Shown: piece after piece, positions 926 through 42,800 of the stretch | How positions within the stretch are numbered: position 1 is the stretch's first letter | How the letters are laid out: each line of letters opens with the position of its first letter | From: Thalia democratica | Taxonomy: Eukaryota | DNA: 64,000 bases | Reading direction: 5' to 3' | Assembly: GCA_965202585.1 (NCBI GenBank) | Contig: OZ241829.1 | Coordinates: forward strand, 50,716,001 to 50,780,000 | Made by a program: the position numbers and the translations under genes | Notes under the pieces: model-generated | Database searches by the model: none | What the model was told of the DNA's origin: nothing | The model's input: the letters and a program-made list of their open reading frames with translations, nothing else

Positions 926-3686
926 CTATATGAAAAAGAACTTTAAACTAATACTTGTGCTTTACTTAACTAAAATTTTTAGTTAGCTTTTATAGCCATT
1001 ATTATATATAAAAAACTTTAGTTCTTTAAGTTTGTATATAATTTAATTGTTAATGATACTTAGATTTAGACAACATTATGATAAAACTCTATCACTTCGA
1101 GTATAAGTTATTGTTAGTGACACTTGACTTTATATAAAGTTAAACACTACCATAATTGAATTTTAAACATCGTTTGTTAGCAAATTTTATTGCATGCTAT
1201 AATTAATCAAAAACTAAAGTTTACATCTAGCTGGTGTTAAAACAAAAAATTAAGAACTTTCAAATGATTTAAAAGCTTAACTTTTTTTATGTTAAATATA
1301 GTTTTTGTTTAAATAGCTTAACTACTCAATCACTTAACTTCAGATGGATATAATTTTAAGATTTTTTTTTAAACTTGTTAAACATTACACCTGTAATTTA
1401 TCAAAAGGAAAATATGTTTAATGGTTATTAATAAAAATAACAAGTTTAAAATATGTTTCTTGCATACTTTGTGTTTAAAAATCAAAAAATGTTATTAATG
1501 TTTTGGTTATTTTTAAATTTTCAGACAACTTATAGTCTGTTTTAAAAAATTAGTTTACTTCGTACTTATTTAAACCTTAAACAAAAACTAAAGACTTTAT
1601 AAACACATTTTTGCAAACTTAAAAATAAACTTTGTTTGAAGAATTTTATCCTAGTAATTATAAATATATATTACCTTTATCATTTAATAACACAAAATTT
1701 TCATTTAATACAACTATTGTTCAAATTTTTAAACTACTTTTCCGAGAGAAAAATAGTAAATGTATATATGATTTTTTAAAATTAATAAAATACAATACTG
1801 TTTCGCTTTGAACTTGTATTAATTATATAAATTAATTATTATGTATTTTTACACTGTACAACCTTACAACTATGTTTAGTGTACTTAAGTAGGATCTATA
1901 AGCTTTAGTAAAAAAAATTATGGAGGATTTTAAAACAAATATACTAATTTAAAACTAGATAGAAACTATTGTCTTTTTGTAAGACTTTAAGAAAATAATA
2001 AAAAAATGAGGATCTAAAGTTTTTCGATTTCGAAAAAGCATTAAAACTTATCCAACTATTTCAGTTAAGAATTATATAGTCATATAGTCCTACTTATAAA
2101 TTTAAAACAGATGAAACCATTCCTTAAACAGAAACCGCTCAGTTCCAACCCGCCATCATTTCTCACCCGATTGATCAAGGGTAATGGGTAACATTAAAAA
2201 ATAAATAAAAACTAGAAAAAAAGAATAATAGAAAAATAAATAAACTAAGAAATTAAAATTATTTTTGGATGGAATTGTGCGCTGGTGGGAAATGATCTTG
2301 GGTGGTAATTGTTAGTATACCCCTTTAAAATTTGTTTAAGTGTTTTTATAAAAATAATCTTAAAAACTTAGTAAAAGAAACAAATAGAAAAGTTACTAAG
2401 AGCAAAAACATACTAATGGTATTTAGTTCTTTGTTGATTCTTGTATTACTAGAAAATAGATCAGCAAATGTATACAAACTGTAAATTTTCAATGCAATGC
2501 TTATTAAAAAAAAAGTAGCATTACAAGCCACATATTTTCGACGTCTGATCTAAAATACTTAACTTATTAGTAAAAATATTAGTACTACGATAGCTTGATA
2601 AAAAGTCTAAAACGTTAATATTTTTAAACAAACTAAGCAAAATACTTTAAGCAGATAAAGAGCAAAACTAATATACTTTTTGTGTTAGATATAAAATAGT
2701 CTAATGCTGTTTTGTTACTTATTTAATTAAAAACAAACTTAACATTGAACAAAATGTTTTAAATTAGAAAATATACTATAACAACACTAAAATTTGCAAA
2801 ACGTTAAAAAGTTTTGATACTTTTACCCTGCATAGTTATAATAATATAAATTTTTTTTTATTTGCAGTAATTAACCTACACTAAAAATTTTTAGTATTTA
2901 AAACAATTGTTGCAATAATACATATTTTAAAATAATTTAAATATGATGATTTAAATGAAACAAACAATGCTACACTGAGTTTATATTTTCACATTTAAAA
3001 AGGTAAGGTTGTGTATACTTTCAAATAAAAGTAACTTTTTTGTCAAAGTATAAAACAATTATTATAAAGATTTTTGTGACGGATAAAAAATATAAAAAAT
3101 CCACAGCTTTCTTGATGTTAATTAAACTACAAAATCCTAAAACAAAGCTAATCTTTCTAACATCGCACATCTCAAAAAACTTGATTAGAATTATAAATTA
3201 AATTGCCATGTTATATTTGTTACTGAAAATTTAAATAACTGTTATTATAGAAAGCATGTTAAAAAGCCCAAATATATTAAAAAAAACATATTATTAGAAA
3301 AAAAGTTTTCAAAGCAAAGAGTAAGAATGATTAAAAACTAAAACATTTACTTAAAAGTAACAAATTAATTGTTGTGTACAAAAAGAAAAAAATAAAAGCA
3401 AAACTAAGATTGGTAATATTTTTTTATTTCAAAGGTATATTTGTCTATAATTTTTTTTTTCAGAAACTATACGTTAAACTAGATTATACAACATAAAGCA
3501 TTTACAAAATTAATAACACAATTAGAAATATCACCAGGCCATTTTGTTAATTAAATTAAAACAACATTCATTAAGATAGGCACAAAAATCTATTTTAATA
3601 TTTCATTTAACGTTTATCACGTTTAAACCTTTATGCTTAATTAGTATTTTGACAAGTGTTTACAGTTTGTAATGTGGAAGTATTTT

Positions 3687-3884
3687 TTATTTTAAATGTT
3701 TAATAGAGACCGAACTCGTAGGTTTGTGAGAGCTTACATGACAACTTTTTCTAATCATTTCTTTGTTGATAGGAAGAAAAACTGTAAGTCTTTGTTGAAT
3801 ATTAACCCGACAAAAAGGACAGCTTTCAATTTGTTCTGAGCATGATTTACAACAAAGTTGGTGACCGCATGGAACAAATACAAC
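3687..3884 (-). CDS. MYLIP: MYLIP exon 8, RING and stop
   Basis: VVFVPCGHQLCCKSCSEQIESCPFCRVNIQQRLTVFLP..KHLK then TAA. Confidence 0.92.
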   Translation of the reverse strand, partial: VVFVPCGHQLCCKSCSEQIESCPFCRVNIQQRLTVFLPINKEMIRKSCHVSSHKPTSSVSIKHLK

Positions 3885-6800
3885 CTGTTAATTTTACAAA
3901 CATATATTTGTGTATCATAAACGCAATACAGAGTTTTTAAAAAGATACATATAGCCTTATATACTTATGCAATACGTAAAAGTTATAGTAATAATGTATA
4001 CATAAAAAGATGCTCTTTATTTGTATTCTTTAACAAAAAATTCAATTAAATTTGGTCATAGGATAACAAATATTTGCATACTAGAATTAAAACGTTTACT
4101 TCTTTATATGACAACTTGTACAAATAATAACAAAAATATAATCGTAGCTTCTTAAAAGTTTTCTAACTTAAATATATATTAGGAGACATTATATCTAGTT
4201 ATTATTTAATTTTAAATTTTCCAAGTAAATTTTTGATATTTTTAAGTGTTTAAGTTATGACTAGTACTTACTGATCAAAACACTTATTGATCAAAAAGTT
4301 TTATTATTTCAAAAACATGTGATTTATTTTCAAGTCACCTATACCCGAAAAGTACAACTCAATAACTATAAACTGTAATACTTATATTCAAATATTAAAA
4401 AATAATGAGAAGAACGAAGAAATTTAACTACTAACCTCTATCTCTTTGTCACAGCAGATATTACAAGTTAATGCCTCATTAATAGAGTCCACTAAGAAAC
4501 TTGTATCTTGACTAGACAGTATTTCAGATTCATTATTTACATTTTTTTCTACTTGTTTCATAGGCTTTCTTTTCTTTAACTTCTGCTGCTTTTTGTACAA
4601 AATTCTCCTCGCGTTATCATGTACCTCTCTTGCTGTACGTTGGATGTCAAACATATACTGTTTATCTATAAAAATTAACATTGGTCTTGAAATTTTAAAG
4701 TAGTACCAGCTTTTATTAAGGTTGACTCAATAATCTTATTTTTTAAAGAGCAAATTTTTTAATGATGATTGTTTTACAGTAATATAACTAAATTTTCTAC
4801 AAAGATTTAGTTAGAAAACTGACTCTATGGTAAAAGTATTACCTAAGGACTTAAACAAGAAAATAAAAAAATACATGAATATAAATTTTTAAAAGTATAA
4901 ATCCTTTAAATCTTCTTGAAACTGTATATGCGTAGTGTTTTGTTAACAATGTTTTTTAAGTTTAAATATCAATTGTTATACACAATTCTGTAGAGTTCAA
5001 AAATATTGTTAATGAACAACTTTGTAAACATTGAAACTTTAATTTAATTACATCACATTACAGTTCAAAACTAAATTAAAATATAACTTGTTGTTTTATA
5101 TTGTAATATCATTCATTTTATATCTTCAAAAAAGAGTTTAAGAAAAAGAAAACAACTATGGCTTTAAATCAAACATACAAACAAACCTGCATCAGGAATA
5201 TTTTTGGGTCGAAACAAAGCAATGAAGTGTCCTTTGAAGTCGAGTGAATGCTGATACCTTACATTGGGGTGAACTGTATCCCATGTGTAAAATGCCAGCA
5301 TCTCTGTAATTATCCTGTAAAAATTAAATTACTTACTAATAATTTGAAAACATCAAAAGAAATAACTCATACATAACTAAATATACATAAGGTCATAGCA
5401 GGGACAAAGATATTTTTAATAAGTTAATATAGTCTTTATTTATTAAGTACAAACTGTTAGAAAACTTTTATAGAAAACTAAAAATTTAACTATTTTGTGA
5501 GACCTAATATTTTTTTCAATTTTTTGATCTTCAAGGAAGCTTTTCACAGCTATTTTTTACACCAAAATTCTATGATTTAACTAGAAGTATATCTTCTCTA
5601 AATTATACTTAAACTTTTCTAACTTTTAGGAAACATTCTTTGCATGATTATAGAAAATAGTTTGGTAGCATTAAAAAAAAAACAGGCTTTGTACGCAAAA
5701 TATTTCAGTTTTAGACTGACATTTTCTTAACTCTTGCTTGGCGGCGCCTAGTTGGGCTTGTAAGCAGATAAAACGACGTAGCCTATTAGTTTTGTTGTAA
5801 TGGCGTAGACTATTAAAAAAGGACTTTTTGATTTTTTTCAACTAAAATTTAACTTTTTACATATAGCCCTTTTAAAATATCATAAAAATTTTAGTTGTTG
5901 GAGCTTGTATTGTCATGTAACTACTACAAAAATATTTTAAAGTTTACTTTCAGATTGCTAGTTCATAAATATTGATTTTTTTAAATAACTTCAACTACAG
6001 CATCTTTTTAAGCTTGAAATAAACTTATTCTTTTAATAAAATAAAAGGATAATACAAAAAAAAAAAGAAGGCTGCTACTAATTTAAAGTCGATTAAATTT
6101 TGTTCCGACAGAAATTTTTTTATTTAGATTTAATTTTCAGAAAAATTCTAGAATTTGTACTGACAAACCCTGGTTATTGCCACTATTTTCTTGATTTTAT
6201 TAAAATAAATGTGCTAAATAACTTTTTTGGGGTAAAAAATTTAAATAAAAAATGTTGACAAATACACTGCATTTTTTATTAAGTATAAATCTTTTTAAAA
6301 CACACTTATCAACTACTGTGATTTATTTAAGAAAATAAAAATTTCTACTAAACAAAAAATGCAATGTATTTGTCAATATTTTGTATTATGATAAATGTTT
6401 AATACATAAACCAATATTTTATTTTAAAAGACATTTACAACTTAATAATCTACTAAAAAAAGAGATTTTAAAACTTTTCACAGAAATTCATGTTTTTAAG
6501 CACTTGAAATTTCAAAAACTGACAATTTGATAATATTGCCAAAATAAAACTTATTAGCCTGATGAGTATAAGTAATTAATTTCAAATATACATCTTTAAG
6601 AGTATAACTAAAGTGATAAAATAAAAATATTCAAACAGTAAAATTTATTTTTACTAAATAACAATAAAGAATAAGATGATTTCAAAAGGATTGTTTAAAA
6701 ACTAATTAAACAGTTTTTCAAACGAATAATTTAAATTATAGAGAAAAAATTTAAATTTATATTGTTTATCGAAGTCTAAATAATCATATATTTTTACAAT

Positions 6801-39800: not shown

Positions 39801-42800
39801 TTAAAAAGGTTTAATCATTATTTTGAAGTATTTGAGTATTGGAACTTATTTCTAAGTTTTACGGAATTTTACAAACAAAAATTTACCAGGCTACTTCATA
39901 AATTTAGTAACTTATGTTTTTTTCTATATTAGTTACAACTTATTAAAATAGCTTTATTTTTTTCCCTTGTATGCTTTCTTGAACTTTTCAGCTAGCTCAA
40001 TCCAAATAAGTTTTATAAAAATACTAAATAAAAAAAAAAAATAAAGTTTTTGCTACTTCTTTGACCAAAGTTTCAAACTACAACAGTTTTAAATAAAACA
40101 AAGTAAACTTTCACATGCACAGTGGGCTGGCAAGTGGTCATTGACTATTTTCGCGACTAAGCAGTTAAAGCAAGATTTTTATTTAATTGTTTAGAGCGGG
40201 GTTTAGTCTTTTAAAAACTCGGTTTATTTCTGTTCTGCTTAAAGTATACTAAAAGTTATGTAAGCTTAAATGTAGCCAAAGTTTGCTTTTTTTAAGTTTA
40301 AAAAAGCCTCGAAAAATGCTTAAATTTTTGTCAAAATTAAGGTCTACATCTACTGTTAAAAAACACCTTATAAGCTTTTATACAAATACTTTTTTTTAAG
40401 TTTTTTCATTTCTTTGGTTTAATGTTCATTGAAAAAAGTCAAAATTCTTTGAATATTTAAATGTAAAAGTATATTATTTCTCATTTAAAAAATCTTCTAT
40501 TCTCACCGAAAATTCATTGATGCTTTTCTGACAATTTTGGGTATTCTTCAGGGTTAATTTTCTCAATTCGCCACCGAAGAACCAACATAATTTTTTTTTA
40601 AATAATCTAGTAAAAATGACAAGGAATCTATATACAAATTTACAGACAAATCTATTATGTGGAATATAACTATTTTTTTGGTTTTGAAAAGCGATATTTC
40701 TGTTAAAAAAATTGATATAATATCCTATCCCTGGTTTTTCACTGTGAAAAAAAAGACCATTTTGTATGTTCTAGAAGGTTCTTAATGTGTATAGATTCAC
40801 TTACTTTTGTTTACAGATCATTTAAGCTCCAAGAATGATGAGAACAGTTAGTATTGGTCAAAACATGGTAGCTTAGTATATGTTTTAGTCATTGAAATAG
40901 TTTTTTTTATACTATTTTAGCAAATTAAAGGTTTTCTTGAAAAACCGTATCCCACAGGCCATGGTGGAACTTCTACAACAGGTAACGAAGTCAAAACTTC
41001 GCTAAACACCAATAATAGGACTCTGCTGACGAAGCATATTTCTGATGTTAGTTTAAAAGAAAACATTTACAAAATTATTATGTATGTTTCCATTATTTTA
41101 TGGCCTATAAATTCTAACAGAAAGATTAATGTAGAGAAATACTCAGTCTTATTTCAAAAAACAATGATGCTGGTCATGTCGGTTAAATGGATTCGCTTTA
41201 CTCCAACTACGCATACTGTTCTCGCACATAGTGCTGAACTAATTGAGCAAAACAACGGTAGAGGTTTGCTAAACTACACCGAAAGTGGATTGGAAGCTAA
41301 AATTAAGTTTCTAAGACAGTAAAGAATGAACTTTTCAAGGAAAACTTCTCAGTATGAAAATTTAACAGACTGTTTAAATCGATTATGGGACAAGAGTGAC
41401 TACGATGTTAATAACACTTTAGACAGACTGAATTGCACTTATTGTAAAGAAGTCGGACATACTGCGCGAAGTTGTTTGCAGCTAAATTAAATAAATTCAT
41501 CATGTATTTCAGAATGAGAAACGTTGTTACATATGCTTTGTGCTACTGAATAGAGTGTTTTATTTATTTGAGAAACTTAATTTCAAAGAAGTTTTAAGAA
41601 CTTACTGTTTGACTTATATTTTATAGTAAATTTAAAGTACTTTTTTTAATCACAGGCTAAATTATTTTGTTTTTTGCACTGTTTTGCATCGAATAAATGT
41701 TTTTATTGTTCAAATTGTTTACAGTTTTTTTCTTTTGATAAACTAGTACAAATGTAACGTTATTAATAATACAAACTTTGATATACAAAGATCAGCCTTA
41801 AATTAAAAATAAACTGTATTTAAAGTATAGTTTCACCCGGCTTGATATTGAAAATTCATTCATATTTAAACTAAAATGGAAGTAAATGTGACTCTCTTGA
41901 GGTAGCCAATTATAATTTTCTTTTTTTTTTTAAGTTTCTTTCTTTAAAGTTTCATTAGAAATTAAAATTTAAACTATTTTTTAAATAAAAACAAACATTA
42001 TTCTTATTGTAACACTAAGTGTAACTTTAATTTGTATTATAGTGCTTCTTATGACAGTTTTATGTCAATGGCCGCTTGATCCCCGTTTTCAGCCCACTGT
42101 GACATGTTGTAGAAAATTTATAGTTTTTATTTCTACTCATTTATCAAATACTTACTAATTTTAATATTCCTTACTTTATATATAAATAGCTAATAAGACT
42201 TAGATAATTTTTTTAACTTTTTTTTAGATCAGTTTTGGATCAACATGTATCTGATTTAAAGCAAAGATTACAAGATGAAAAAAATCACAACAATAAAAGA
42301 TTAGATAAGCTAAATGAAGAAGTTCATAATAAGGAAATCGAACTTAAGAATACAATAAAAAATCATAATATACTCAAGTAAATAATAAGTTTAAAACCAT
42401 TAATTTTGTAAGAGCGCTTTTACTAGTTGATAATGAAGAAATCGAAACTAAGAATACAATAAAAAATCGTGATATACTCAAGTAAATAATAAGTTTAAAA
42501 CCATTTAATTTGTAAGAACGCTTTTTCTAAATTCAATATTTGTTTTTCAATCTCAATAACGATAAAACAAAGTTAACTTTGTTCGTATTTGTTAAAAACT
42601 TACGAGACGAAATGCTAAAACTTTTTTTGCAAAATGTTTTAATTGTATTGAATAGTTTAGATAATAATATCAGTAATCAAAACAATCTAATAATGATTAA
42701 AAGTAGGTTCAATACATTTTTATGTGACATAATACATCCTTAAGCATAAAAACATTTATAGAGACAAATTTCGGGATTTAGAAACAGAATTAAGCAAGAT

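Follow-up and report, generated by a model that had tools for sequence, protein, structure and literature searches.

Does a zinc knuckle in a decayed transposase of the pelagic tunicate Thalia democratica mark a lineage on its way to RAG, or is it the usual tail of a usual transposon? The motif in question, CX2CX3GHX4C, is that of the CTT* tail of invertebrate RAG1-like (RAG1L) proteins, where it has a role in binding the terminal inverted repeats (TIRs) (Martin 2020, PMC7204232), and knuckles of this type are present in invertebrate RAG1L and absent from jawed-vertebrate RAG1 (PMC7204232; bioRxiv 10.1101/2023.08.20.553239). Transibs, too, have been found with asymmetric TIRs, the CCGHC tail and a GRPR/K nonamer-binding domain, all of which are considered probably ancestral (Martin 2023, bioRxiv 10.1101/2023.08.20.553239). 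We suggest, with a probability of roughly 0.88, that the 42 bases studied here encode the CCHC knuckle of a Transib C-terminal tail, held in a dead, internally deleted copy of a 3658-bp autonomous element.

The knuckle and the element that carries it

We use "the window" for the whole 64-kb stretch of DNA that was analysed, which has a GC content of 27%. Retranslation of 40921-41490 places CX2CX3GHX4C exactly at 41434-41475 on the forward strand, in frame with a transposase remnant. This is as the first-pass annotation had read it, and its reading that the frame of the knuckle runs on past a premature stop, the TAA at 41320-41322, also holds, as does its assignment of the motif to the C-terminal tails of invertebrate RAG1L, the CTT*/CTT1 type (PMC7204232; bioRxiv 10.1101/2023.08.20.553239). 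Six-frame translation of the entire window yields the motif a single time; it arises in none of 300 dinucleotide-preserving shuffles of the window, and the looser CX2CX4HX4C in 10 of the 300. The knuckle lies 52 residues past the catalytic-glutamate motif (TESGLEA). Among 82 relatives, comprising fetched representatives and a few cluster members that each extend at least 75 residues beyond this motif, 62 carry a knuckle 51-56 residues past it.

Against the Pfam zf-CCHC model (PF00098), the window piece scores 19.5 bits and the tail of an intact protein of the same family, P0203, scores 19.1 bits, both below the curated gathering cut-off of 20.8. We regard this shortfall as the near miss of a short model, because the spacing of the ligands is canonical and nucleocapsid knuckles in the PDB match. 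Indeed, the tail searched alone against the PDB finds its best match in retroviral nucleocapsid knuckles (MoMLV NCp10, E 0.002), which have the same CX2CX4HX4C spacing and a Gly before the His (PF00098; MoMLV NCp10, PDB 1a6b). This match is what one would cite in favor of a chance motif, or of a piece of retroelement Gag nucleocapsid captured downstream of the remnant. Here, in contrast to the retroviral arrangement, a single knuckle is appended to a DDE transposase, with no Gag protein. The shuffles and the shared offset from the catalytic glutamate also argue against chance or capture, as do the identical tail of intact proteins of the same family, an alignment that runs without gaps through the knuckle, and zinc ligands that are invariant across relatives at 29-57% identity. 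Collinear homologues refute such an origin, to which we give practically no credence.

The element in which the knuckle lies is 1984 bp long (40118-42101), with the 5-bp target-site duplication ACATG on both sides. Its 12-bp terminus, CACAGTGGGCTG, has only two matches in the window, at 40118 (+) and 42101 (-), where 0.01 would be expected by chance. A second box, GG(T/C)CATTGAC, lies 6 nt inside the left terminus and 16 nt inside the right one. The insertion lies between host exons, in non-coding DNA. Its features are as follows.

40113..40117, no strand: left target-site duplication ACATG, read from the sequence; same pentamer at 42102-42106
40118..40129, +: left TIR CACAGTGGGCTG, an RSS-heptamer-like CACAGTG plus GGCTG
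40136..40145, +: left subterminal box GGTCATTGAC, separated from the 12-bp terminus by 6 nt
40118..40938, +: 5' non-coding arm, equivalent to 159-979 of the full-length element L008, upstream of the master ORF (blastn)
40922..40939, +: internal-deletion junction, reading ...AAAGGTTTT and, directly across the join, CTTGAAAAACC; the two collinear blocks overlap at 40922-40935
40939..41553, +: transposase remnant, about codons 505-710 of 710 (gap-free tblastn and alignment)
41320..41322, +: in-frame stop 1, TAA; Tyr in intact copies
41434..41475, +: CCHC zinc knuckle, CX2CX3GHX4C (translation, Pfam, PDB match, alignments, cluster members, shuffles)
41476..41550, +: post-knuckle tail, carrying stops 2 and 3
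41488-41490, +: in-frame stop 2; Glu in intact copies
41515-41517, +: in-frame stop 3; Trp in intact copies
41551-41553, +: natural stop, TAG
41554..42089, +: 3' non-coding arm (blastn against L008)
42064-42073: right subterminal box, reverse complement GGCCATTGAC, 16 nt inside the terminus
42090..42101, -: right TIR, reverse complement CACAGTGGGCTG
42102..42106, no strand: right target-site duplication ACATG, read from the sequence

How much of the element has been lost is evident from comparison with L008, a complete 3658-bp element with the same two ends. In blastn alignments, 40118-40935 of the window corresponds to L008 159-979, which is 5' non-coding DNA (92.8% identity over 822 columns), and 40922-42101 corresponds to L008 2629-3816 (93.8% identity), for an overall identity of about 93%. 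It follows from this two-block match that about 1650 bp are absent from the window copy: L008 980-2628, which takes in the last stretch of the 5' UTR and roughly codons 1-500, and with them the two catalytic aspartates (D261 and D361 in P0203). What remains is the last ~205 of 710 codons, which align without gaps to intact proteins, through the knuckle, at 92% identity over 200 columns with P0203 and at 54-58% identity (tblastn) with the intact relatives P0166, P0164 and P0165. Still present in the remnant are the ZnH2 histidines, the third catalytic glutamate, the C-terminal domain and the tail, but not the conserved ANNK that follows this glutamate.

In-frame stops interrupt these ~205 codons three times, and there is no start codon at the junction. 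The first-pass annotation had counted one premature stop, but the stop just past the knuckle, at 41488-41490, is premature as well, since intact copies run on from there to the natural stop. The start that it gave to the frame also needs correction: QIKGF (40921-40935) is read-through of 5' non-coding DNA, and homology to the transposase begins at ~40936-40939. The relic in the window is a Transib copy that is dead, non-autonomous and internally deleted, with both ends kept. It owes the survival of the motif solely to the fact that the 3' portion of the gene escaped deletion. The exact junction sequence has one hit in JGI metagenomes, on an unrelated contig.

It could still be argued that the remnant serves the host as an expressed, domesticated short DNA or RNA binder bearing a knuckle, and about 23% of the words sampled from the element do occur in three metatranscriptome runs. 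Full-length copies could equally be the source of those words, however, and domestication is made very improbable by a frame that is broken by three stops within 205 codons, lacks a start codon where the junction lies, is about 8% diverged from the master protein, has lost the conserved ANNK and lies in non-coding DNA.

The intact family and its enzyme

The relic has intact relatives. An exhaustive HMMER search with the 133 amino acids upstream of the first stop recovered 347 cluster representatives at E <= 1e-3, and a word search found intact proteins of 704-715 amino acids that belong to the nearest clade. Through the P0167 cluster (109 members at 90% identity) we reached P0203 and P0207, two 710-aa proteins of the window copy's own family, with a tail identical to that of the window save for the stops. 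The knuckle, which the first-pass annotation had allowed might be absent from other copies, is kept in all 12 of the listed cluster members that cover the tail, in two variants, and 13 sequences, with identities as low as 29%, all have its four zinc ligands. The alignment of relatives likewise shows no variation at the DDE residues or at the CC/HH zinc ligands.

At the level of whole elements, L008 contains one long ORF of 714 codons, and all its other ORFs are at most 114 codons long and antisense to the main one. A matching target duplication was not found in the flanks of L008 on its metagenome contig, which is probably a collapse of several copies. The relative L005 is an intact 3953-bp element with the target duplication CCCTA and one called gene (the ORFs of L008 and L005 encode 710/711 amino acids), and a third element, L001, is flanked by the duplication CAGCG. 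The 6-nt versus 16-nt spacing of the second box is common to the window copy, L008, L005 and L001. Non-coding DNA in the full-length elements amounts to only 0.6-1.0 kb per side; neither L008 nor L005 holds a RAG2-like kelch ORF, and there is no room for one. In P0203, a Pfam search found no RING or zinc-dimerisation domain, and nothing at all in residues 1-280. The N-terminal domains of RAG1L and the RAG2L partner, for which the first-pass annotation had proposed to inspect full-length copies, are hence both missing from these relatives, which are plain single-ORF Transibs encoding 704-715 amino acids.

Modeled in AlphaFold with 34 homologues, P0203 gives a mean pLDDT of 88.9, falling to a moderate 72-82 in the tail. 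The VIA alignments of this model are listed here with its first and last aligned residues, ranges that involve no residue-level superposition of the knuckle.

HzTransib: Z 32.2, model 158-710, rmsd 2.7, 468 of 480 residues
mouse RAG1: Z 31.4, model 91-671, taking in the nonamer-binding domain
amphioxus RAG1L (BbRAG1L, 6b40): Z 28.1, model 159-693, past the knuckle at 672-685
isolated RAG1 nonamer-binding domain: Z 5.6, model 88-155

Foldseek matches of the same model agree (RAG1, HzTransib, BbRAG1L). The solved chain of HzTransib (residues 21-499) starts at model residue 158, so that it leaves the nonamer-binding-like domain at 88-155 uncovered; alignments to RAG1 end at model residues 671-679, before the knuckle. 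As predicted by the model, then, the intact 710-aa enzyme has the full layout of the RAG1 core, with a nonamer-binding fold that begins at about residue 88, an RNase-H domain, a zinc-binding domain and a C-terminal domain, and this last is followed by the knuckle and by two short terminal helices.

Transib, RAG1L and the history of the knuckle

The family has the properties by which Transibs are recognized. Its elements generate 5-bp target duplications (ACATG in the window, CCCTA in L005 and CAGCG in L001) and end in 5'-CACAGTG terminal inverted repeats, CACAGTGGGCTG being found at both ends. Its DDE transposase is homologous to the RAG1 core (P0203 against HzTransib, E 6.5e-24) and is the sole gene in L008 and L005. 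Membership in Chapaev was considered and rejected, since every match, by structure or by sequence, is with RAG1, RAG1L or HzTransib, and the target duplication measures 5 bp.

Within the Transibs, Tao 2022 (PMC9435367) distinguishes a Subgroup I, with asymmetric TIRs, a CTT1 tail and a retained alpha11-12 region, whose members it regards as the intermediates nearest RAG1L; HzTransib, which has another kind of tail, is assigned there to Subgroup II. The family studied here has asymmetric TIRs (6 versus 16 nt in the window copy, L008, L005 and L001), a CTT1 tail of the form CX2CX3GHX4C, and an insert in the zinc-binding domain, whose residue-level equivalence to alpha11-12 is assumed. In P0203, P0151 and P0042 this insert makes the interval from the CxxC to the following conserved helix about 45 residues longer than that of HzTransib; the stretch is aligned by HMMER with BbRAG1L and is modeled as helical at high pLDDT in P0203. 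On these three architectural counts (knuckle tail, unequal ends and zinc-domain insert), the family matches Subgroup I.

A close published counterpart in architecture is MleTransib_3931 of Mnemiopsis leidyi, a Subgroup I element (PMC9435367) that likewise has a single ORF, unequal bipartite ends and a retained zinc-domain stretch. Its published tail, ...CKKCSGRGHIGRYC..., has the CX2CX3GHX4C of the window family, and the element, read side by side with P0203, stays collinear with it through the zinc-domain insert, sharing GLGGAFC.LC, CYH..A...HWSE and ARK.SQ..NL.DC. The likeness is one judged by reading; the hosts differ, and the window copy, unlike MleTransib_3931, is a deletion derivative. 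We found nothing directly relevant in the literature on Transibs in tunicates.

The best match of the family in both sequence and fold is nevertheless HzTransib of Helicoverpa zea (PDB 6pqn/6pqx), a "minimal" element of Subgroup II. The two have in common the 5-bp target duplication, ends of the CACAGTG type and the lack of RAG2L, but HzTransib has no knuckle in its tail, which reads ...SDPLISFTRPKLDAHKRQTYFKETVELLQLQD, and also lacks some 45-46 residues of the zinc-binding domain.

With BbRAG1L (PDB 6b40), in turn, the family shares CX2CX3GHX4C directly after the C-terminal domain, the CTT* position. BbRAG1L, however, acts together with RAG2L and carries an extended zinc-finger region at its N-terminus, and the window family has neither: the convergent RAG2-like kelch ORF is absent from full-length L008 and L005, and the N-terminal zinc-finger or RING dimerisation region from the 704-715-aa proteins. 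The family also has about 25 extra residues, in two short helices, past the knuckle, and its similarity to BbRAG1L is low. In numbers, P0203 scores 87.6 bits against HzTransib and 34.8 bits against BbRAG1L, and a profile of the tail region gives 115 bits for HzTransib, 71 for BbRAG1L and about 52 for RAG1. The HzTransib-like protein P0196 scores 390 bits against HzTransib and 19 bits against BbRAG1L.

These comparisons bear directly on whether the element could be the relic of a true RAG1L-RAG2L transposon, or of a transitional lineage, that has lost its RAG2-like gene. A knuckle tail and unequal ends are also features of invertebrate RAGL elements (PMC7204232; bioRxiv 10.1101/2023.08.20.553239), the zinc-domain insert that is missing in HzTransib aligns with BbRAG1L, and the 34.8 bits of the family against BbRAG1L lie above the 19 bits of P0196. 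Yet the intact 3658- and 3953-bp elements hold one 710/711-aa ORF and short non-coding flanks, the RING/zinc-dimerisation domain is missing by Pfam, with the nonamer-binding fold starting already at about residue 88, and both the P0203 scores and the tail profile favor HzTransib over BbRAG1L. We consider such a relic quite improbable. The element is a plain RAG2-less Transib.

In a tree with intact relatives, the window remnant pairs with P0203 (100% SH-aLRT) inside a clade of intact, knuckle-bearing proteins, and a branch with 100% SH-aLRT separates the family from three rows that include P0196. The clustering with tail-less Transibs that the first-pass annotation had entertained is hence not what is seen, as the HzTransib-like rows stand apart in the unrooted tree. 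Both trees were drawn by midpoint or outgroup and built without RAG1L rows, and because they are so drawn we infer no root. A scan of bacterial and archaeal genomes for outgroup relatives gave 35 pattern matches, none of them a relative. In the tree of 41 diverse relatives, from which the tails were cut away before building, 31 rows carry the knuckle, and mapping the trait requires six state changes, at least four of them forced by well-supported branches. In these relatives the knuckle is the norm, and it has been lost more than once. With the knuckle in 31 of 41 relatives and at least four to six state changes, it is a shared old character and no transitional mark; being both common and repeatedly lost, its presence alone is no sign of closeness to RAG. 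The proposal that this element stands nearer the transition from Transib to RAG1L than a minimal Transib therefore survives in one sense only, that of a published architectural class; as a statement of kinship it is not borne out by the 87.6 bits to HzTransib against 34.8 to BbRAG1L or by how widespread the knuckle is.

Proposed action of the knuckle and its significance

How the knuckle would act in the intact enzyme can be proposed by analogy with amphioxus RAG1L, whose knuckle is described as a DNA clamp (Zhang 2019, as cited in PMC7204232 and bioRxiv 10.1101/2023.08.20.553239). We posit that it would bind one zinc ion through C672, C675, H680 and C685, and clamp the transposon end beside the CACAGTG heptamer. 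The likely contact would be GGCTG, a guess made from its conservation at both ends. The N-terminal nonamer-binding-like domain, again by analogy, would read GG(T/C)CATTGAC, the box that on the right end is set a further helical turn inwards. In the window copy the knuckle is without function, about 500 codons and two of the three catalytic residues being deleted and three stops added. With both of its ends intact, this copy could still be mobilized by the enzyme that full-length copies make.

The finding is an ordinary one, since the knuckle is the normal tail of a published type of RAG2-less Transib and the copy that bears it is shortened and dead. It was also already known that knuckle-tailed, unequal-ended Transibs form the Transib group most like RAG1L (PMC9435367). 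A modest gain is the identification of an intact master, the protein P0203 and the element L008, for an abundant Transib family of marine animals. Whether this family is a still-active Transib of the Subgroup I type in a chordate, the pelagic tunicate itself, is a further proposal that we hold as possible, though doubtful. If it were true, all the DNA-recognition modules postulated for the ancestor of the RAG transposon (the nonamer-binding fold, bipartite ends offset by one helical turn, and the CCGHC knuckle) would be combined in an active family without RAG2L, and together with a terminal helix like that of HzTransib. Such a family would provide a one-protein test system for the redundancy of knuckle-based and nonamer-based end recognition, and likewise for the origin of the HzTransib tail by loss of the knuckle. 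P0203 and L008 may offer a way to study, in a system free of RAG2, what the knuckle does in end recognition.

Element ends and the copies that carry them

The window copy, an internally deleted Transib element of 1984 bp, provides the following non-coding features:

Window 40118-40145 and 42064-42101: element-end regions
Window 41912-41949: T-rich run within the 3' non-coding arm

The spacing from the 12-bp terminus to the GGNCAT box, 6 nt versus 16 nt, is conserved among the window copy, the full element on metagenome contig L008 and the related elements L005 and L001, including elements from another assembly (ERZ25067903) whose proteins are only about 54% identical. The right spacer is also partly conserved, as GGGG.TCAAGC. 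The L008 flanks (1-158 and 3817-3910) show no matching 5-bp duplication (GATTT versus CAGTT); the right flank is also present in L009. Several copies have probably been collapsed into L008 during assembly.

N-terminal part of the intact transposase

P0203 residues 1-157 (L008 1128-1598): N-terminal part of the transposase

In the AlphaFold model of P0203, the intact 710-aa transposase of this family, residues 88-155 adopt a RAG1-like nonamer-binding-domain fold (Z 5.6, rmsd 2.7 to 3gna, the isolated RAG1 domain). At the position of the RAG1 GRP motif, most clade members have KRP, whereas P0203 has GKKIS. The fold is preceded by a confidently modelled helical region of about 87 residues, for which no convincing match was found.

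The knuckle and the tail beyond it

Window 41476-41553: post-knuckle tail, about 25 residues beyond the knuckle in intact copies, pattern ..LK....C..E...LL..

In P0204 (192 aa, same 90%-identity cluster as P0203), ...PYKGIKVD is joined directly to a 17-residue stretch, a join that removes the knuckle; this protein, too, appears to derive from a family member that suffered an internal deletion. In the related, decayed Transib of L003 (region 2629-5574), whose right end lies near position 3071, the knuckle has degenerated to CTFCRENDRTIRSC; retroelement-like ORF fragments downstream lie beyond that right end.

The alignment of the P0203 model with HzTransib, a knuckle-less minimal Transib, reaches the final residue of both proteins (VIA), and the HzTransib tail, ..TYFKETVELLQL.., resembles ..SSEWETLLHML... 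A terminal acidic/hydrophobic motif is kept in the knuckle-less relatives listed. The 'type II' tail may thus be nothing more than a 'type I' tail that lacks the knuckle.

A published salp contig

Under the heading 'Transib loci', Supplementary Data 2 of Tao 2022 (PMC9435367) includes SthRAG1L_2902, a 1043-bp Salpa thompsoni contig matching hemichordate RAG1L-B at 38%. Since its stretch ...ARKTSQMENLHDII resembles the ARKTSQ..NL.DC motif of P0203's Transib clade, its RAG1L label may be worth re-examining.
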